From positions 248,001 to 312,000 of the IMG/VR virus record IMGVR_UViG_3300005613_000001: 64,000 nt of DNA; one strand, 5' to 3'. The position numbers and the translations under genes were made by a program. The notes beneath the pieces are model-generated. The model worked only from the letters and a program-made list of their open reading frames with translations. It had not been told where the DNA came from and searched no databases. Positions 20,702 through 63,119 of the stretch are shown piece by piece (within the stretch, counting starts at the first letter, position 1; the number at the start of each line of letters is the position of its first letter).

Positions 20702-22867
20702 TTATTCAAAATCCCAGAAAGGCACCACTTCTGCATCCATCGCAGCCTGATTGCTTCCCTGGATGGAACACTCACAACATAAAGTTAAAGTTCCCGTGGT
20801 AAGATTCTCATTGACGAACCCATCCATATTAGGACTTTGAGTGATGTCAAAATCTGGAGGATCGCCTTCACTAGTGCAATTATCTTCTTCAAGAATCCAA
20901 TTTGGATTGGTAAACATACTCCAACGCCAAAGAACGTTCCCACATTCACACTCGCAACAAGTAGTCAAAGACTGATATAAATACTGACCATCATCCTCAG
21001 GCTCTACTGCAATGCAACCACCCGAACAATCTTCGGCCAATACATCCCAACTTGAACCATTCCATTCATATGTGGTTTCTCCGCACCAGCACTCACAACA
21101 AGTAATAATTTCCGTTTGACAGTCTGCCATGTCTTCGGTTGGTTCGGATGGCTTGCAACCATCCGAACACTCATCCTGAATCATCTCCCAACTGAACCCG
21201 CCGCCCTTCCACGATGCCCACCCACAACCGCAATCAGGCGGCATTTCAGCACAATAAGGAGGCACACAGCAAGATTCATAAGTATCGCCAGTAGTTAATT
21301 CCCATTCATTTATAATACCAGGGGGCGGATAATGCGGGATGCAGTCGCCAGTACATCTGTCATCTGATAGACCCCATTCGCCAAAAGAATTAACCATCCA
21401 CAAAGATGTGCCACATCTGCAATTACTGCAAGGAACTGTAGTCGGCCAACCGTAAATCCTTTGCAGGTGGGGGGCCAAATCACTTCCATCCCCCTCATTA
21501 GCCAGCGATTCACTCTCATAATTCCCTTGTTCCATTAGCCCTCCCATCTCATGCACTAAACCAAATACATGACCTAATTCATGAGCGGCTACATTTGCTA
21601 CGCTAGAACCATCATTGGGAGTTCCTTCCTCAGTTGCGCCTGTATCGGATCTGCGCCAATCAGCAAGAGGGTTAAAATGTATATCGCCGTGCTGCCCACC
21701 AATGACTCCTAGTTGTTCGGGCTCCTCGCCTTCTCCACCACACTCATAAAATTCCCCAGAGGCATGATGGGCGTGAGCAAGAGTGCCGATACTTAAATTA
21801 TGGAACGCATAACGTATATCGCCAACGCTAGGATAATCAGCCAATAAATAGGTTTCACCATCAATCCCAGTATTTGGAACATCCCCAGACTCGTCACCCA
21901 AAACGCTAAAACTTAAAGTTAAATCATTTGCATATCCGTTCGCTCTGCTAAAGGTGGTATTAAACAAATTCGCCCACCAGGCATGAGCTAAATCAGTATC
22001 AGCTTTAAATTCTGCGGCACTAGGAACCCCATCGTCATCTCCTAAAGTCTCTACGGACAGACCCGCTTCATACTTGGTAGGTGGATGAACATAACTTACT
22101 GTAATAGTAATTGATTGAGGACCACATGCCAACTTGGCTACCGCCTCTTTAATTTCAGGCCAAGGTTGTCCAATCGTTCTTCCATAATCACTCCCCGTAG
22201 TTGTAGGCAGTGTGTCAATATCAGAATTTCTTGCACATCTAGCATCTTGAATGTCCCCATCTTCTTCTGTTCCTAAAACGGGAGGCGGTAGCGGAGAGCA
22301 ATCAGGGCCACAACCATTATTTAACAACATCCATCCAGTGCCATAGAAAGAACCACACCAATTTGTCCCAGTTGAAACAGAGGTACTTAAACTCCGACAA
22401 CCAATCCACATCCATTTAGATAAACCACAACAAGACCCTGATAGTTTTACACAATCTGTGGCAATCACAATGGGGTTGTAACCAAAGGCTCCAGGCCCAG
22501 CAACAATTTCATTATCAGGATAAACAGGAACACAACATTCATCACATTTATTGTTGCCTAGTTTCCAAAAATAAGGAGGATTATGAAGGTCGCTAATATT
22601 TATAACATCGCCCGCCGATTGTCCTAATACAGTTGAATTGCAATCATACAACAACCATTTGCAATCCCCACAATCAGCAACCGCAGCAGCGGCTTTCATA
22701 CAAGAAGAGGGAGAATCTCTAAGCGGACGATCAGAAGGATCATCCGTATTGTCTTTATATTGTCTGTTATTGATTTTAATAGAGGCGGGGGATGCATACC
22801 CGCCTTTAGTTAAAATCAATGAATCAGGCACATCCTGCGGCCCACAATTATTAACAAACCTAGCCAT
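20702..22867 (-). CDS. Cys/Trp-rich repeat protein with matrixin-type metalloprotease domain
   Basis: LAHA, GDIHFN, AAHELGHVFGLVH plus Met-turn (GLM); repeated CG...W...W...C..C modules; TATATA upstream. Confidence 0.75.
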   Translation of the reverse strand: MARFVNNCGPQDVPDSLILTKGGYASPASIKINNRQYKDNTDDPSDRPLRDSPSSCMKAAAAVADCGDCKWLLYDCNSTVLGQSAGDVINISDLHNPPYFWKLGNNKCDECCVPVYPDNEIVAGPGAFGYNPIVIATDCVKLSGSCCGLSKWMWIGCRSLSTSVSTGTNWCGSFYGTGWMLLNNGCGPDCSPLPPPVLGTEEDGDIQDARCARNSDIDTLPTTTGSDYGRTIGQPWPEIKEAVAKLACGPQSITITVSYVHPPTKYEAGLSVETLGDDDGVPSAAEFKADTDLAHAWWANLFNTTFSRANGYANDLTLSFSVLGDESGDVPNTGIDGETYLLADYPSVGDIRYAFHNLSIGTLAHAHHASGEFYECGGEGEEPEQLGVIGGQHGDIHFNPLADWRRSDTGATEEGTPNDGSSVANVAAHELGHVFGLVHEMGGLMEQGNYESESLANEGDGSDLAPHLQRIYGWPTTVPCSNCRCGTSLWMVNSFGEWGLSDDRCTGDCIPHYPPPGIINEWELTTGDTYESCCVPPYCAEMPPDCGCGWASWKGGGFSWEMIQDECSDGCKPSEPTEDMADCQTEIITCCECWCGETTYEWNGSSWDVLAEDCSGGCIAVEPEDDGQYLYQSLTTCCECECGNVLWRWSMFTNPNWILEEDNCTSEGDPPDFDITQSPNMDGFVNENLTTGTLTLCCECSIQGSNQAAMDAEVVPFWDFE

Positions 22868-22896: not shown

Positions 22897-24096
22897 TTAG
22901 CTGCTACTTCCGATTTTCTTCTCAAGATCTTCAGCAGTAATTTCAGTTTCCTCAACTGAATCACTGTTAGTCAGATCAATTGCATCTCCAAAAGCAGATA
23001 AGTATTTCTCTACTTCATCCTTGCTTTTAGCATCAACTATCGCTGGACAATCTAATAATAATTCCACAGGAACATCATTCCTCACCTTGCTGCTTCTGAA
23101 AGTAATAGTCTTCCCATCAGCATAAGGTTCTTCAACTTGGAACATCCCCGCAGAGCCCGTAGATTTAATTCTTTTAGACTTTAAGAAAATACCTAGCAAA
23201 CCACCCAAAGGATTAATGCCACTATCAAAATAAAGCTGTACGCCTTCTGTCTCCCAATGAGGGCTAAAGGACCGACATTTCTTATTTTGAACCTTGATAT
23301 TAACCCCAATGGGGATTTCCAAGTCTGTATTTTCAATAATCTTATGAGGAGAAACCCTAATGCGACAAGAAGCATAGAATTTCAAAGCCTCACCACCACC
23401 AGCAGTTGTCTCAGGAGAACCAAATAATACGCCAATCTTTTGACGAACTTGATTCACCACAAATAAGGAGGCGTTGTTCTTATCCAAAACACTAGTCAGC
23501 TTTCTAAATTCCTTGCTGCAAATCTTGGCTCGTTCACCGGGCTGCTCGTTGCCACCTACAATTGACTTGAATTCTGTCTTTTTGTAATTCTCAGGCAAAT
23601 CGGTTTCCCTGAATTCCCTTTCGCATGGTGAAGCCCCAATAGAATCGTATATGAAACAAATAGGTACTTCTGGACCTTTCTTCTCACGAATCTTCCTGAT
23701 TACGTTGTAAATCTTCAAGAATGATTGCTCTAGAGTCTCTGGTTCAAAGACAATCAATTTTGTGGGATCAACGTGACCAGCAGCTACAGCGAAATCTCTG
23801 TTCGTAGCATGCTCACAATCCAAATAAATTGCATAACCATTAAGCTGTTGAACCCCATGAAGAACACTCATTCCCACTAAAGATTTTGAGGCGGCTGGGG
23901 GTCCGTAGATTTCGGTGATTTTACCACCAGGGATGCCGCCTCCAATAAATCGACCACTATTAATATAATTAAGGGCTAAATTACCCGTATCAATAAAATA
24001 CTTTGTGTTACCAACATCAGTCAGCATTACGCCGCCGTGGTTTTTAGTTAAATCGTTATAAACATCGTCATATTCAGCAGTTTTCTTTTTTGCCAT
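22897..24096 (-). CDS. uvsX: RecA/UvsX recombinase
   Basis: IDTGNLALN, GKITEIYGPPAASKS, YLDCE, YDSIG, VNQVR, GGEALKFYAS. Confidence 0.92.
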   Translation of the reverse strand: MAKKKTAEYDDVYNDLTKNHGGVMLTDVGNTKYFIDTGNLALNYINSGRFIGGGIPGGKITEIYGPPAASKSLVGMSVLHGVQQLNGYAIYLDCEHATNRDFAVAAGHVDPTKLIVFEPETLEQSFLKIYNVIRKIREKKGPEVPICFIYDSIGASPCEREFRETDLPENYKKTEFKSIVGGNEQPGERAKICSKEFRKLTSVLDKNNASLFVVNQVRQKIGVLFGSPETTAGGGEALKFYASCRIRVSPHKIIENTDLEIPIGVNIKVQNKKCRSFSPHWETEGVQLYFDSGINPLGGLLGIFLKSKRIKSTGSAGMFQVEEPYADGKTITFRSSKVRNDVPVELLLDCPAIVDAKSKDEVEKYLSAFGDAIDLTNSDSVEETEITAEDLEKKIGSSS

Positions 24097-24197: not shown

Positions 24198-25148
24198 TTA
24201 CAGTTCATGCAACTCTTGCATGAAATCAGTGTCCGCCATTTGCTCTTCCGGCTCTTCTTTGGCTGCTACGGGAGCAGGTTCAGGAGTCGGGGCGGGAGCG
24301 GGAGCGGGATCAGGGGTGGATTCTACCACCACACCACTCACCACAGGGGTCTCATCAACGGGAGTGGTTTCAGTTTCCGATACAACACCTTCAATGTTGT
24401 ATTTGGTGGGATCGATTCCACCTTCCTCATCTGGAATAGCACCAAAATGAATCTGAAGTTCCCGATCAATAAACTCGGCGGGCTTAACATTCCGCAGAGG
24501 ATCTAAGTCATGGCATTCCGCCAACATCTTTTCAATTTCATCAGGAGTTCCCAACGGAGTGGGATCATCATTAAATTCAGAATCATTATATCTTGGGAAA
24601 CCTCCGACCATTTCCTTGACGATTACCATATCTCGGCCTTCCTTGCCTGTTACGTCAAAGATGTTGCCCAAAGGCTTCTTTCGTTCGTCACCCACACAAG
24701 CACGAATAATCAGCTTGTGAATGGTTTTCCCAGTGGAGAAGATTTTAACACCTTCTTGGCTGGGATCGTTGCGAACTATCGCATTGTAGTAGAATCTTTC
24801 AATCGGCTTAATTGCACGGGCTTTATCAATGTAACCTTGAGCGGTTTCACCAGTGCTTCTATTCGCTAGGCTCCACAGATGGTTATAAACGTCGCAAGCT
24901 GGGCATACGCCGGGCTTGCCTACCCATTTACCACCTTGAAGTTCTTTACGACAGTGAATACTCTTGCCATTAATCATATGCAATCTAGTTGATTGAAATG
25001 GCAACTTCATGCCGTGTGCGGGGGGGAGTAATCGGAGAGAAACTTCGCCATTTTCCTTTGGCATTTTGACAAACTTTGCGAGAAAGTCGTCACTCTTATT
25101 TTCCGATAGTCTGTCTGCCTCTTGTTTAATTCCGTCAAAAAAGTCCAT
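24198..25148 (-). CDS. Single-stranded DNA-binding protein, T4 gp32-like
   Basis: LRLLPP, CPAC, RFYYNAIV, VKIFSTGK, FDVTG..G, YNDSEF; acidic C-tail. Confidence 0.85.
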   Translation of the reverse strand: MDFFDGIKQEADRLSENKSDDFLAKFVKMPKENGEVSLRLLPPAHGMKLPFQSTRLHMINGKSIHCRKELQGGKWVGKPGVCPACDVYNHLWSLANRSTGETAQGYIDKARAIKPIERFYYNAIVRNDPSQEGVKIFSTGKTIHKLIIRACVGDERKKPLGNIFDVTGKEGRDMVIVKEMVGGFPRYNDSEFNDDPTPLGTPDEIEKMLAECHDLDPLRNVKPAEFIDRELQIHFGAIPDEEGGIDPTKYNIEGVVSETETTPVDETPVVSGVVVESTPDPAPAPAPTPEPAPVAAKEEPEEQMADTDFMQELHEL

Positions 25149-25647: not shown

Positions 25648-26427
25648 CTATCTGATATCCGTAGCTCCGCCTTCTACAACACCGTCCCAACGAAGCCCAT
25701 CATCGCTGAGACCGCCTCCGCCGCCGCCTCTTAAACTAGGCATATCACTATCAAACTGCCCACCACCAACTAAACCTTGCCCCTGTGCAACAAAACACGC
25801 GGAAGGAACAAGTTGGGCCTTTCCCAAATCATCTTTAGTTTTGTATAGCATTGGCAACTCTCTACCCGCTGCAACCTCTCTGGGGTCTTTTTCTTCTTTA
25901 AATATCGGGTATAACTTGCCCCTGGTAAATTGCCCTTTCACCATCCCAGCACGCACCATATCATCTGTGGGATCAAATATCTCATTCCTTATAGCCTTCT
26001 CTCCAGAAGGAGCAGGCGTCTTAGCTATCGCTTCATGGGGGTGTGCGGTCGGAACCGGAGCAGTCGGTTTAGCCATCGCCTCATGGGGGTGTTGTGAAGG
26101 TAATTGCGCAGGACATGATGGTGCCTCTTGTACTGGGTGTGATTCTAAAGCCCCGGCAATTGAATCTAAAGTGAATTTCTTATTCTTTATAACAATGCCG
26201 CCCTCTGTTTCCCTGAATTTAATCTTCTTCTTAGAAAGCTCTGTAATCTCTACATCTACCACCCAAATATCCCGCCTCGCAAGTTGCATCATTATTGTGG
26301 CGGCAAGCTTTTCTAACGGAACGTCTTCAAAGGGATCGCCTACTTTCTTCTTAAGCTCATCCACTTTGTCCGTATCATATCCATCTTCGGTCTTTTTATG
26401 ATATTTATATGTGAGTTCGTATCCCAT
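25648..26427 (-). CDS. Hypothetical protein with internal Pro/Ala-rich duplication
   Basis: HPHEA(M/I)AK occurs twice. Confidence 0.65.
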   Translation of the reverse strand: MGYELTYKYHKKTEDGYDTDKVDELKKKVGDPFEDVPLEKLAATIMMQLARRDIWVVDVEITELSKKKIKFRETEGGIVIKNKKFTLDSIAGALESHPVQEAPSCPAQLPSQHPHEAMAKPTAPVPTAHPHEAIAKTPAPSGEKAIRNEIFDPTDDMVRAGMVKGQFTRGKLYPIFKEEKDPREVAAGRELPMLYKTKDDLGKAQLVPSACFVAQGQGLVGGGQFDSDMPSLRGGGGGGLSDDGLRWDGVVEGGATDIR

Positions 26428-26431
26428 TTTT

Positions 26432-27052
26432 TCACCTTTGTACTATGCCCACTCCATACCGCGTTTTAAATGTAATTGGTTCCCTATTCTGGGTCTTACA
26501 AAAATCAAAATAGGCTTTCTTGGCATGCTCATGACTACTGATATAATCCATTACTATTAACCCATCTCCCGCCATGTGTTGCCAAATCATATCTAAATAA
26601 TCCCTATGCCGATCATATGTCATCTCCTCATTAATAATCACCGTATCCCAATTTCTTTTGGCAAAATAATCAACAAAGGCATCGTCAGTAATCTCACCCA
26701 AATAGAAATCAAATCTACCCTTGAATACACTTTTAATGTTCGCCCTTGCTAATCTTAGAGAATAATACTCCTCGGTCTTTTCTTGGAAGCCTAAAAACGT
26801 TTTTACCGTTTTACACCCTTTTAAAAAACACCCACTCAATAAAGCCAATCGCGTCCCAATCTCTGCTACCGACTTCGCCTCAATTAATGTGCCCAAATAA
26901 TAATAAAATGGAGCATATGCAGGGTCCGTATATGGAGCAGTCTTACGTGATGACTCCTCTATAACCCTGAACTTATCCAATAATATTCTAGCAGGAATTA
27001 AACTTTTTGCAAGTTTAGAATCCAAGATTGGCTTTAATTTAGAGGCGTTCAT
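26432..27052 (-). CDS. Methyltransferase-like protein
   Basis: AKSVAEIG; DGLIVMDY. Confidence 0.45.
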   Translation of the reverse strand: MNASKLKPILDSKLAKSLIPARILLDKFRVIEESSRKTAPYTDPAYAPFYYYLGTLIEAKSVAEIGTRLALLSGCFLKGCKTVKTFLGFQEKTEEYYSLRLARANIKSVFKGRFDFYLGEITDDAFVDYFAKRNWDTVIINEEMTYDRHRDYLDMIWQHMAGDGLIVMDYISSHEHAKKAYFDFCKTQNREPITFKTRYGVGIVQR

Positions 27053-27309
27053 TTAAAAGTAAATAAATTTTTGAGGCGTTGCATAAATGTAATCTTAGGT
27101 TTGACCTCAGACTCTACTGGTTCATCCAGTAGCATTTCAACAGCATCTTCTAAGTATTCTACTTCATCACAATCTTCTGGCTCTGGGTCTTCGGGATGAG
27201 GAGTAGAAACCTCTGCAAGACATGTCTTCGCTAATATAAAACGACTTTTATTGGCTGGTTGAGGGACAACAGCCCCATTTACTACATTGGCTCTTTTTGG
27301 ATCAAACAT
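27049..27309 (-). CDS. Hypothetical protein
   Basis: ORF overlapping the next gene (ATGA). Confidence 0.55.
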   Translation of the reverse strand: MFDPKRANVVNGAVVPQPANKSRFILAKTCLAEVSTPHPEDPEPEDCDEVEYLEDAVEMLLDEPVESEVKPKITFMQRLKNLFTFK

Positions 27310-27322
27310 ACTTTATAGTAGT

Positions 27323-27361
27323 AAAAAAAAAGCAGATTAGAACGACAAGTTCTAATCTGCT
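27323..27361 (-). terminator. Intrinsic terminator
   Basis: Perfect 13-bp stem AGCAGATTAGAAC/GTTCTAATCTGCT, 5-nt loop, then a T run. Confidence 0.8.
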
Positions 27362-27362
27362 C

Positions 27363-27512
27363 ACCTTAGCAAGCGAGGTTTATGACCTCTTTTGAAAGCC
27401 GCTGGATTTTGCCATAGGCATGAAATCCCCGTGTAGCGTTACTTCCGTTCTGATCGCCTCATTCACACGGACCAGGCGAACATCAGAAGATTGAGACCAT
27501 ATAGGCCAAGGT
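27363..27512 (-). ncRNA. Candidate structured ncRNA (~150 nt), family unknown
   Basis: Ends pair (ACCTTGGC/GCTAAGGT); three internal hairpins and a possible pseudoknot; AT-rich promoter box upstream; terminator downstream; no ORF. Confidence 0.55.
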
Positions 27513-27563
27513 TATAATTATATATGTGTATTATTTCAAAACATGTAAGATAAATACAATATC

Positions 27564-28181
27564 ATGGACGTAAAATATCCAGAGGAAAAAGCGTGGGTAG
27601 ATTTTTACAATCGCAAATGTTGCTCATATGATAAATTCTACTTTAATGGCAACAACTGCTTTGACGGCCCTAACTTCCAAAAAACATGTAAAGCATTAAA
27701 TTTAAATTTTGAAAACAAACAACTTCTAGATGCTGGCTGTGGAATTGGCAAGTTAGCAGTGTTTTTGGCAATTGAAAACCCCACCCTAAAAGTATTTGGC
27801 ATCGATTACTCAAAAATGAGACTGAAGCAAGGAGCAAAAATGGCAGCGATCAGTAATGTTAAAGATCGATGTAAATTTCGCCTAAAAGACATTAATCTGT
27901 TTGTTGAAAAAACCCCCTTGACCTTTGATATAATATTCTCATTTGAAACCTTTGAACATCTCTTACATCCACATAAAGCCATGCGTAAATTAAAAAAACT
28001 CCTAAATCCAGGGGGTATAATATTGGGATCAGTTCCCTTGGGCAGAGGAGGAAGACAACATTTAAGTGGCTTTAGAACCGAAAAACATATAGAAAGAATA
28101 TTAAAAGTCAAAACTCTCTCTCTTTCCGGGGTCACATTTAGACGGCGCAGTACCAGATTATTCTTCTACCAGAAGCCATAA
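27564..28181 (+). CDS. Class I SAM-dependent methyltransferase
   Basis: LLDAGCGIG, GIDYS, FETFEHL, LNPGG. Confidence 0.85.
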   Translation: MDVKYPEEKAWVDFYNRKCCSYDKFYFNGNNCFDGPNFQKTCKALNLNFENKQLLDAGCGIGKLAVFLAIENPTLKVFGIDYSKMRLKQGAKMAAISNVKDRCKFRLKDINLFVEKTPLTFDIIFSFETFEHLLHPHKAMRKLKKLLNPGGIILGSVPLGRGGRQHLSGFRTEKHIERILKVKTLSLSGVTFRRRSTRLFFYQKP

Positions 28182-28189
28182 ATACAAAT

Positions 28190-28831
28190 ATGCTACTCGA
28201 CGAAAACAAAATTAAATTCAAACGAATACCAGGGCAAGAACTCCTTGAAACCAAGTATAAATTGGTCAAAGAGGGGCTGATCGCCAAACAATCACACAAA
28301 CGACTATCAACTAATGTATCTTCTCACAACACATACAAGCTAATTAGGATAAGAAAATCCATACACGTCGCTCAGGGTCCGTCGTACTTCGCCTCCGCTC
28401 CCTTGGATCAATGCCCCAATTTGCCCACGCTTACCGAACCAGAACTTATTAGTTTAACCGAACCAGAACTAATCTGTATGACTAATGATGAAATTGGAGT
28501 TTCTCTATTTGCTGTCGAATACACAAGAACGAAATCTATCGTAGGGAAAACGCCTCCTAAAGTTATTGCCACTCCCAAAAAAGGCGGAATTGGCTCAAGC
28601 GTTGCCCGAAAACGTGTCGAAACAGGACAACACGGGCCAATTACAACACGTCGTTCTTTAGAATCAACAAGAAGTCAAAGAGTAGGCACAACACCCACTA
28701 AAGGACAAGGAAAAAGAGGCGGCGGATCAAAACGAATGAATGAAGGTAAACATGGCGTTCAAAAAGAGAGTCGCAGCCTAGCTGCTATTAGAACCGCTAA
28801 AGTTAGCAAGGCTGGCGCTGTTTCTCGTTAA
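28190..28831 (+). CDS. Hypothetical protein with basic low-complexity C-terminus
   Basis: TAAATA 5 nt upstream; LTEPELI duplicated. Confidence 0.5.
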   Translation: MLLDENKIKFKRIPGQELLETKYKLVKEGLIAKQSHKRLSTNVSSHNTYKLIRIRKSIHVAQGPSYFASAPLDQCPNLPTLTEPELISLTEPELICMTNDEIGVSLFAVEYTRTKSIVGKTPPKVIATPKKGGIGSSVARKRVETGQHGPITTRRSLESTRSQRVGTTPTKGQGKRGGGSKRMNEGKHGVQKESRSLAAIRTAKVSKAGAVSR

Positions 28832-31042
28832 TCGCGCACGCACCCTAAGAAATACATCATCCCAACTACCTTCAGTTTCTTGTCTAAATAGCCGAATTGA
28901 AGGATACCAAGGCGATACATCTCCCAAACCCCATCTCCAATCAGGCTTGTAAGGTAATAACCCCCACGCCTCTTTGCCCATCGCACCGGCCAAATGAAGA
29001 ACCGCTGTGTCTACCGATATTACTAAATCTAAAGCATCAACAATAGAGGCGGTATCCTCAAAATCGCCTACCTCCAGATTTAAAGCCATGTCTTGCAATA
29101 TGTCACATTCATCAGAGGTAATATTTTTCTGAAGCGAGTAGAGCTTTACGCCGGGCATCTTAAGTTGTTGAAAGCTTGATACATCAATTGATCTTCTTCT
29201 ATCATTAGGGTGCCGAGGATTGCCTTTCCAACAAATACCCACCTTATACTCATCCCCAATTAATACACAGTCAATTTGAGCGGCAATATATGGTTTATTG
29301 GGAATGTCATAGTAACCCAAAAGATGTGGCAAACTCACAATGGGGATGTGATAATCGTACTGAATCTCGTCACTCTTAATGTCCTTCAGGTGAATCTCAT
29401 CTACGCCCTCACAATGCTCAAGTAAATTAGCAATCACCAAAGAACAAGACAACACTACATGACAGCCCCGCTCTTTGAGTTTTGGCAAGAATCTTACAAA
29501 ATGAATCGCATCACCCAACCCCTGCTCGCAGAATACCACAACCCGCTTACCCTCCAAGTCATCTGTCCCATTCCACTTCTTGTCCGCCCCATATTGATTT
29601 AAATATGCTATCATCATCGGATAGTGATTTAAACGATGCTCGTATTCAACCCACGCCTCCTTATATTTCCCCATGAGTTGATAACAATAAAATAAGTTCA
29701 CATGTGCGCCCGAGAGACCAGGGCGAAGAGAAATGGCTGATTCTAAATACTCAGCAGCTTTTTGCAAATCCAAGGCATCCATATAGGCGCTCCCCAGATT
29801 TGTCATCACATAAGGATCAATCTTATACTCTAAAGATTTTAACAGCACTCCAATCGCAAGATCGCTCCTATCTACATTCCTGTATTGTAATCCCAAATTA
29901 TTCAAAAAAGAGGGATTCTCAGGAACCAATCCAACCGCCGTCTGAGCATGCTCCAAAGCCTTCTCCATATCCCTAGACGCATAACAAATAGATATGTTGT
30001 TGTGAAGTTCCGCATTATCAGGCTCTAACTCAATTGCCTTAGATAATAATGCAATTGCATCGTCAGGCTGTGATAGGTTGTTTTGAACAATCCCCAACAT
30101 TTGAAGCACATTGGTATTGTTGGGCTCTACCTTAAGAGCTTGTTGTAGTAAGCCCACCGCCTCTTTGTCTTTTCCCTGCTTACAGAGAAGCGTAGCACTA
30201 CCTACAGCCTTCTCTACTAAGTTCTGGATAGATTCAGGGGTCCGACTCTTCTTCTTTGTAAATTTTAAAGGAGGCGGCTCTCCGAAGATTCTACTGGAAA
30301 GCTCAATCGTTTCCTCATCAAACAAAGCAAGATATTCTGGGTCGTCTTCGTAATACTTCCACCGATTCATTAAATCCAAGTTTTTGGGCTCATTTACCGC
30401 CTCAAAACTGCTACCCCTACTGAATTCCCATCCTATAGTAGAATTAAAACCCTTATCCGAGAAGATTGCATCGGTATTGAATTCACCACTAATGCTTCTA
30501 CGATATTCCCTATCTTCAAACCACAAATTAAAATCAACCCTCACAGCATTCCTCAAATATTCAGTCTCCCCTAAAAACTCCTTAGCATATTGTTTCCAGA
30601 GATGAATTGTGAACTGATCTACAGCATTAGCTTTTCTCTGTGTCTCATCCTTATCAGATCGAACAATTTTGAGGCGGCTAGCAAATGTATTAAATGGATC
30701 GCGGAGGACAATGATAGGGGTACTCAATACCCTTTGTCGGTGAAGATCCACATAATCTAATGGGTGATCTTCAAAACTCAATAAATTAATCCCTTTGCCA
30801 GAGCCTCCTGCAAGATAATTCACATGCGACTTCAGAACTTCGACGGTTCCATCTGTATTCAACTTACAATTATTAAAATGACGCTTATCGCCGTACCAAT
30901 GGAGCAAAAGCCAATAGATTAAAGCATGATTGCCACTTCTCCGCAGTCCAAAAACATGCAGATCGCCCTTATTTTGAGGCACTTCCACTACATTTTGTTG
31001 GCGAAACAGCATATCTCGTATTTCTTTTAACATTTTTTCCAT
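28778..31042 (-). CDS. Fusion: sulfotransferase-like + TPR repeats + GT9-like glycosyltransferase
   Basis: GLRRSGNHA and LRDPFNTFAS; TPR repeats; EQGLGDAIHFVRF, GICWKGNP, DLVISVDTAVLHLAGAMG, DWRW. Confidence 0.85.
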   Translation of the reverse strand: MEKMLKEIRDMLFRQQNVVEVPQNKGDLHVFGLRRSGNHALIYWLLLHWYGDKRHFNNCKLNTDGTVEVLKSHVNYLAGGSGKGINLLSFEDHPLDYVDLHRQRVLSTPIIVLRDPFNTFASRLKIVRSDKDETQRKANAVDQFTIHLWKQYAKEFLGETEYLRNAVRVDFNLWFEDREYRRSISGEFNTDAIFSDKGFNSTIGWEFSRGSSFEAVNEPKNLDLMNRWKYYEDDPEYLALFDEETIELSSRIFGEPPPLKFTKKKSRTPESIQNLVEKAVGSATLLCKQGKDKEAVGLLQQALKVEPNNTNVLQMLGIVQNNLSQPDDAIALLSKAIELEPDNAELHNNISICYASRDMEKALEHAQTAVGLVPENPSFLNNLGLQYRNVDRSDLAIGVLLKSLEYKIDPYVMTNLGSAYMDALDLQKAAEYLESAISLRPGLSGAHVNLFYCYQLMGKYKEAWVEYEHRLNHYPMMIAYLNQYGADKKWNGTDDLEGKRVVVFCEQGLGDAIHFVRFLPKLKERGCHVVLSCSLVIANLLEHCEGVDEIHLKDIKSDEIQYDYHIPIVSLPHLLGYYDIPNKPYIAAQIDCVLIGDEYKVGICWKGNPRHPNDRRRSIDVSSFQQLKMPGVKLYSLQKNITSDECDILQDMALNLEVGDFEDTASIVDALDLVISVDTAVLHLAGAMGKEAWGLLPYKPDWRWGLGDVSPWYPSIRLFRQETEGSWDDVFLRVRARLTRNSASLANFSGSNSS

Positions 31043-61009: not shown

Positions 61010-61025
61010 ATTATAAAACCTCCAG

Positions 61026-61109
61026 CGGAAGGCACGGGACTCGAACCCGCAACCGCATTATACGGCAGGTGATTTCCAGTCACCCCGCTAGCCAATTCGC
61101 TTACCTTCC
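61026..61109 (-). tRNA. tRNA-Ser(GGA), CCA not encoded
   Basis: Cloverleaf GGAAGGT/GCCTTCC, anticodon arm GGTGA-CTGGAAA-TCACC, long variable arm, GGTTCGAGTCC. Confidence 0.93.
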
Positions 61110-62987: not shown

Positions 62988-63036
62988 TAAAACAAGCCCT
63001 TATCTACATTCTACCATAGATAAGGGCAAAGGAAAG

Positions 63037-63119
63037 TGGCCTTGGCGGGATTCGAACCCGCACGGGGATACCCCCACATGGTCCTGAACCATGCGCGTCT
63101 GCCATTTCGCCACAAGGCC
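63037..63119 (-). tRNA. tRNA-Leu(CAG), CCA not encoded
   Basis: Cloverleaf GGCCTTG/CAAGGCC, anticodon arm CATGG-TTCAGGA-CCATG, long variable arm, GGTTCGAATCC. Confidence 0.95.

Follow-up and report, generated by a model that had tools for sequence, protein, structure and literature searches.

A few described RNAs resemble the element analyzed here, although no Rfam 15 family matches it. The packaging RNA of phi29-like phages (phi29 pRNA) is likewise a phage-encoded, stand-alone, single-copy structured RNA (about 120-170 nt), whose loop-loop pairing seemingly covaries. However, pRNA pairs between molecules to form a ring on the portal, whereas the phages considered here are huge, T4-like in their replication genes, and have no known need for such an RNA; covariation alone does not tell whether the pairing found here is within or between molecules. 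The SAM-I riboswitch (RF00162) and other aptamers combining a junction with a pseudoknot share with the element a four-way junction closed by P1, a pseudoknot from the P2 loop to a distant strand, a terminator following directly, and a methyltransferase gene nearby. In the present RNA, the conserved nucleotides are different, the pseudoknot partner is an internal loop of P3 rather than J3/4, no expression platform is detectable, and the element is not always located in a 5' UTR. The pistol ribozyme (RF02679) appears to contain a similar 6-bp pseudoknot between a hairpin loop and an internal loop of the next helix, but the RNA described here is about three times larger, differs in its conserved positions, and has its own promoter-like box and terminator. 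The HK022 put RNA and the lambda pR'-tR' "6S" transcript show the same order of a promoter (here only a promoter-like box), a short structured transcript of about 190 nt, a terminator, and a long phage operon; put, however, consists of two simple stem-loops and acts only in cis, while 11 of 53 copies of the present RNA have no operon behind them. In phage T4, a small H-type pseudoknot is located directly in the gene 32 leader, whereas here gp32 lies 1.6-4.2 kb further on, behind a terminator and two to four other genes. Finally, a catalogue of candidate structured RNAs mined from IMG/VR lists 8,495 covarying intergenic motifs of 29-151 nt, many of them with terminators (PMC10690425); the text of that paper does not describe the present motif, although an unnamed entry cannot be excluded.

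Locus and predicted fold of the RNA

The analyzed window is a 64,000-nucleotide stretch (bases 248001-312000) of the 527,112-bp IMG/VR virus record IMGVR_UViG_3300005613_000001, which is estimated to be complete. The element occupies a 254-bp gap between divergent genes. On the plus strand, an ORF encoding a class-I methyltransferase starts at 27564. On the minus strand, a run of tightly packed ORFs starts at 27309 and includes an 86-aa ORF, a 206-aa methyltransferase-like protein (26432-27052), a 259-aa protein (p259; 25648-26427), a 136-aa protein (p136), gp32 (24198-25148), and a UvsX/RecA-like recombinase (22897-24096). The 259-aa protein has no Pfam, PHROG, or NCBIfam match but contains a well-conserved N-terminal domain of about 95 aa. 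Further along (20702-22867, minus strand), a 721-aa protein very rich in cysteine, with repeated motifs of the CCEC..CG type, has a matrixin-like zinc-metalloprotease domain (PF00413, E 5e-8) and no PHROG match.

The first-pass annotation had proposed, from the sequence alone, a stand-alone structured RNA with a promoter, end-pairing, a pseudoknot, and a terminator on the minus strand, and every sequence element it listed was found at the place given. The whole predicted RNA extends from 27512 to 27323 (about 190 nt), with a structured core at 27512-27363 (about 150 nt). It is preceded by the promoter-like box TATATAATTAT (27524-27514). The 5' strand of P1, ACCTTGGC (27512-27505; ACCUUGGC in the predicted RNA), pairs with GCTAAGGT (27370-27363; GCUAAGGU in the predicted RNA), forming 8 bp, one of them G.U. 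A conserved single-stranded 5' motif, GGUCUCAAUCUUC in this phage, lies at 27498-27486. The P2 hairpin (27488-27448) is formed by TTCTGA/TCAGAA and TCGCCT/AGGCGA and carries the conserved loop L2 (27473-27460). Within L2, CCGTGT (27470-27465) is complementary to ACACGG (27434-27429), which constitutes the pseudoknot. The P3 helix (27446-27394) includes the hairpin GGATTT-ca-TGCC/GGCA-AAATCC (27428-27404), that is, P3b (GGAUUU/AAAUCC), a 2-nt bulge with an invariant A, and P3c (UGCC/GGCA). In addition to the helices annotated at first, P3a (GGAAG/CUUUC plus CGCU/AGCG) was identified, which encloses the 3' strand of the pseudoknot and the GGATTT hairpin; the 3' strand forms the whole 5' side of the internal loop between P3a and P3b. 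The P4 hairpin GAGGT/ACCTC with an A-rich loop lies at 27389-27375, and the intrinsic terminator consists of a stem at 27362-27330 (14 pairs, loop of 5 nt) followed by nine T to 27323. The terminator scan found this single site, on the minus strand only.

According to RNAfold, which gives the same nested helices, the minimum free energy is -70.6 kcal/mol against -47.9 +/- 4.5 for 200 dinucleotide shuffles (z = -5.1), and 0 of 200 shuffles fold as well. Search against Rfam 15 at gathering thresholds detected only a tRNA at 63037-63119 in the window. At E <= 10, the locus gave only noise, the best match being STnc240 at 24.5 bits against a threshold of 55, lying on the terminator. ARAGORN found tRNA-Ser(GGA) (61025-61109) and tRNA-Leu(CAG) (63036-63119), both on the minus strand and far away from the element, and no tmRNA. 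Twenty relatives analyzed at gathering thresholds and fifteen at E <= 10 likewise gave no match and no recurrent family, respectively. The annotated absence of a known family is thereby supported.

Relatives and covariation

BLASTN and MegaBLAST searches against GenBank phages found nothing, and two short DNA patterns (14-15 specified bases) scanned against viral contigs returned only chance matches. The relatives were sought through the 206-aa protein, which has 53 clusters of homologues. The first related locus, L002, has a methyltransferase 58% identical and carries the same element just upstream; a strict 20-base pattern found only this locus again. In L002, four double compensatory changes were noted in P1, one in P2, one in the pseudoknot (CCGUG/CACGG becomes CCAUG/CAUGG), and more in P3b. 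In total, 160 loci around methyltransferase homologues were retrieved. A covariance model built from three close sequences was too insensitive, but iterated nhmmer followed by a covariance model built from 24 sequences (R2) found the RNA in 43 of 126 distinct loci within the 1.5 kb fetched. R2 matches 27371-27498 of the window at 74 bits. In addition, two RNA-only patterns scanned against all viral contigs returned 55 stretches, 28 of which were confirmed by R2. In all, 53 distinct RNA sequences were found in uncultured phage contigs of up to 572 kb. Single copies were found in each of the six large records searched, namely, the 527-kb genome and five others of 210-572 kb, one of the six having terminal repeats.

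At least five more loci (L262/L346, L263, L269, L378, and L390) carry a diverged look-alike with the same box, the same 5' motif, and a terminator. In L262/L346 (about 1230-1440) and in L378 and L390 (about 1300-1500), the box, the CCUGUCUUC start, and the terminator are kept but P3c is different, so R2 misses them. A TBLASTN search with the methyltransferase found a single GenBank phage record, the uncultured 595-kb phage LR756511.1, which carries a weak copy of the RNA just upstream of the gene (19 bits, E 0.0035, filters off). R2 accepted none of the first 100 pattern-matching stretches from cellular genomes; as the last 20 were not tested and the scan was saturated by such decoys, absence from cellular genomes is not shown, and the RNA is specific, so far, to a clade of huge phages.

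Covariation supports the core helices, and the pseudoknot most strongly. In the MAFFT alignment A8, 85.7% of cells form pairs, against 62.7% after shuffling and 35-41% when partners are slid by 1-3 columns; the covariation score is 0.679 against 0.258, with 0 of 500 shuffles as high. In the independently retrieved set A11, 91.8% of cells are paired. For the pseudoknot, 94.4% of cells are paired and 6 of 6 pairs covary in A8, and in A11, whose model did not contain the pseudoknot, 99% are paired and 5 of 6 pairs covary. The top stem of P2 is paired in 81.5-89.9% of cells, 5-6 of its 7 pairs changing on both sides, and a conserved G-C plus a U.U mismatch sits at its base. P3b/c is paired in 93-98% of cells (93.3% in A8), with 7 of 10 pairs covarying, and P3a in 66-73% (65.8% in A8). 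RNAalifold on A11 predicts the pseudoknot helix and P3b/c by itself. A mutual-information scan with average-product correction over 53 sequences returned exactly the proposed helices as its top 19 pairs and no further convincing contact. P1 is present, with different sequences, in roughly 18-20 of 51 relatives, including the subgroup of the window, and the rest lack it. P4 was seen by eye in most relatives, usually after a J3/4 rich in A, but its alignment is too poor for pair counts. The conserved U.G pair closing P3c (19 of 24; 17 of 17) would be a C.A mismatch on the other strand, which fixes the transcribed strand.

About 20 positions are nearly invariant, including the 5' GUCUUC (family consensus), the CUG...G.AUG of L2, the base after the P2 top stem, and GAUG.UU...G.CA of P3c with its bulged A and its U-A and G-C pairs. 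In the 5' motif, U8, U10, and U11 of the merged alignment are among the most conserved positions, although no covarying partner was found. Inspection by eye for a partner of GUCUUC, for an antiterminator, for CsrA-type GGA sites, for box C/D or K-turn features, and for tRNA T-loop or anticodon mimicry revealed nothing that held across the family; the window itself has GAAUG, not GGAUG, in L2. No conserved ORF was detected: peptides read from the conserved L2 AUG are 2-67 aa long and unrelated, and the longest sense ORF has a median of 28 codons.

Transcription unit and gene context

A (C/G)ATATATA or ATAGATA box, of which TATATAATTAT is a member, lies 5-8 nt upstream of the first structural base in most of the 53 relatives. 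In the phage's own genome, CATATATA is rare overall (31 copies), but 17 of the copies lie within 60 nt upstream of an ORF start, and it is plausibly a phage promoter element. Likewise, TATATAA and related AT boxes are under-represented in the genome (87 seen against about 209 expected) but concentrated just upstream of ORFs. The sigma-70 scan, which requires a -35 element, did not call the box. On the plus strand, the same scan indicated a near-consensus site (TTGAGA, 16 nt, TATAAT; 11 of 12) at 27491-27518, which overlaps the 5' end of the RNA and the palindromic TATATAATTATA and could drive the divergent methyltransferase gene at 27564. A hairpin plus T-run is found 20-57 nt after the modelled core in 48 of 53 relatives.

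The RNA heads a conserved block comprising the O-methyltransferase, p259, p136, gp32, and UvsX, while the upstream side varies. The AlphaFold2 model of the 206-aa protein is confident (pLDDT 94), although its Pfam match (Methyltransf_24) is weak. According to Foldseek, the nearest solved folds are cation-dependent O-methyltransferases of the COMT type (catechol and caffeoyl-CoA O-methyltransferases) and TrmR/YrrM, the tRNA 5-hydroxyuridine methyltransferase (TM 0.6-0.7, 13-18% identity). A homologue lies near the RNA in 50 of 53 relatives, and p259 follows the methyltransferase gene in 40 of 53 related loci. Among the copies retrieved with the RNA-only patterns, a methyltransferase homologue lies downstream on the same strand, 52-2041 nt away, in all 23 confirmed loci with enough downstream sequence. 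In one locus, L255, the RNA is inverted, diverges from the methyltransferase gene, and runs into a convergent gene, so the adjacency survives the inversion.

On the other hand, this link may be plain synteny, since the whole block is conserved in order. Unrelated genes have been inserted between the terminator of the RNA and the methyltransferase gene: one resembling by eye a small heat-shock (Hsp20-like, alpha-crystallin) protein in loci L253, L307, and L330, one with an HCxxGxxRS phosphatase motif in L309 and L315, a LAGLIDADG homing endonuclease in L340, and, in other loci, Glf. Five large records with the methyltransferase have no R2 match, although three of them carry a diverged look-alike. 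Notably, a 754-aa protein (28778-31042, minus strand) combines TPR repeats with a weak C-terminal GT9 (heptosyltransferase-like) match; its homologue (473-2746) lies directly upstream of the RNA in L002, and a shorter GT9-like gene diverges from the RNA in one subgroup. With the Glf-like gene found there, the neighbourhood looks glycan-related.

Interpretation of the element

Taken together, the data are best explained by a gene for a non-coding RNA of a family not present in Rfam 15, and it is more likely than not that this is a stand-alone, trans-acting RNA. Without transcript data (sequencing-run searches gave no RNA run, and the only run listed is a DNA run holding 8% of the sampled words), the transcription unit is inferred: transcription probably starts a few bases after the ATATATA box and ends at an ordinary intrinsic terminator, giving an RNA of about 190 nt. 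In the subgroup of the window, P1 closes a four-way junction of P2, P3, and P4, and the pseudoknot helix lies between P3a and P3b. The annotation of the element as stand-alone is supported by the relatives rather than by the window itself, where the 86-codon ORF starts only 14 nt after the T-run (ATG 27309). As for the function, a partnership with the neighbouring COMT/TrmR-like methyltransferase, with the RNA as its substrate or scaffold, is the leading but only tentative guess, given that this fold family includes a tRNA-modifying enzyme. A more far-reaching and doubtful possibility is a phage ribonucleoprotein in which the RNA is the specific methylation substrate or a scaffold or guide directing the enzyme, with the single-stranded GUCUUC as a recognition element; that would be an RNA-dependent methylation system in bacterial viruses. 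It is also not excluded that the covarying pseudoknot is an intermolecular kissing contact that builds a multimer, as in phi29 pRNA.

The main alternative, which seems unlikely but is not ruled out, is a cis-acting leader of the methyltransferase-gp32-UvsX operon, either a riboswitch whose aptamer controls the terminator or a put/EAR-like RNA that makes RNA polymerase read through it. Indeed, an ORF on the same strand follows the terminator in 39 of 53 copies, the window included, and in many loci read by eye the gap is under 30 nt, leaving little room for a promoter, which is the geometry of an attenuator. The complexity of the RNA, with a pseudoknot and about 20 invariant positions, is also typical of aptamers. 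However, in 11 of 53 copies the next gene is convergent. In one well-diverged subgroup (loci L431, L458, L452, L453, L455, and L444), a Glf-like UDP-galactopyranose mutase gene and a second gene run towards the RNA, and a divergent GT9-like gene precedes it. These copies and the inverted one in L255 keep L2, the covarying pseudoknot, and P3, so selection on the RNA does not depend on a gene behind it. In 47 members, the 5' arm of the terminator is no more complementary to the upstream RNA than 200 shuffled arms (median p 0.53; 11% of cases below 0.05), that is, no antiterminator signal was detected. In addition, the first downstream gene varies (small ORFs, Hsp20-like, phosphatase-like, methyltransferase), and a second box-like motif was seen by eye after the terminator in L262/L346, L286, L281, and L253, in L346 preceding the methyltransferase gene. 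The element is therefore read as a separate, constitutively terminated RNA gene, although read-through may still feed the downstream genes where no other promoter exists.

A self-cleaving or other small ribozyme, also suggested in the first-pass annotation, is very unlikely. The pairing of a hairpin loop with an internal loop and the conserved bulged A seemingly recall the pistol ribozyme, and phages carry many small ribozymes, but no Rfam ribozyme model matches even at E <= 10, a single-copy element with its own promoter box and terminator is an unusual setting for a self-cleaver, no cleavage site can be named, and nothing in the present data supports this reading. A chance fold or a DNA-level signal such as an origin or a protein-binding site, which the position between divergent genes and the overlapping plus-strand promoter-like site might suggest, is effectively refuted by the compensatory changes, and is further contradicted by the U.G pairs that make sense on one strand only, the one-directional terminator, and the cumulative GC skew, which peaks near 52 kb, falls steadily to the end of the record, and shows no inflection at the locus.

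Huge phages are known for carrying tRNAs, tmRNAs, and CRISPR arrays, whereas a complex, single-copy, clade-wide structured RNA of unknown function has not been described for them in the literature found. What is new is the RNA family, as nothing in Rfam 15 or ARAGORN matches it, although an unnamed entry in the IMG/VR catalogue (PMC10690425) cannot be excluded, while its functional class is unresolved. The fold is as elaborate as a riboswitch aptamer, with four helices, a pseudoknot, and about 20 invariant bases, and even so the element seemingly behaves as a separate gene. This points to a ribonucleoprotein, a binding RNA, or a catalytic RNA that these phages need alongside their replication and recombination genes.
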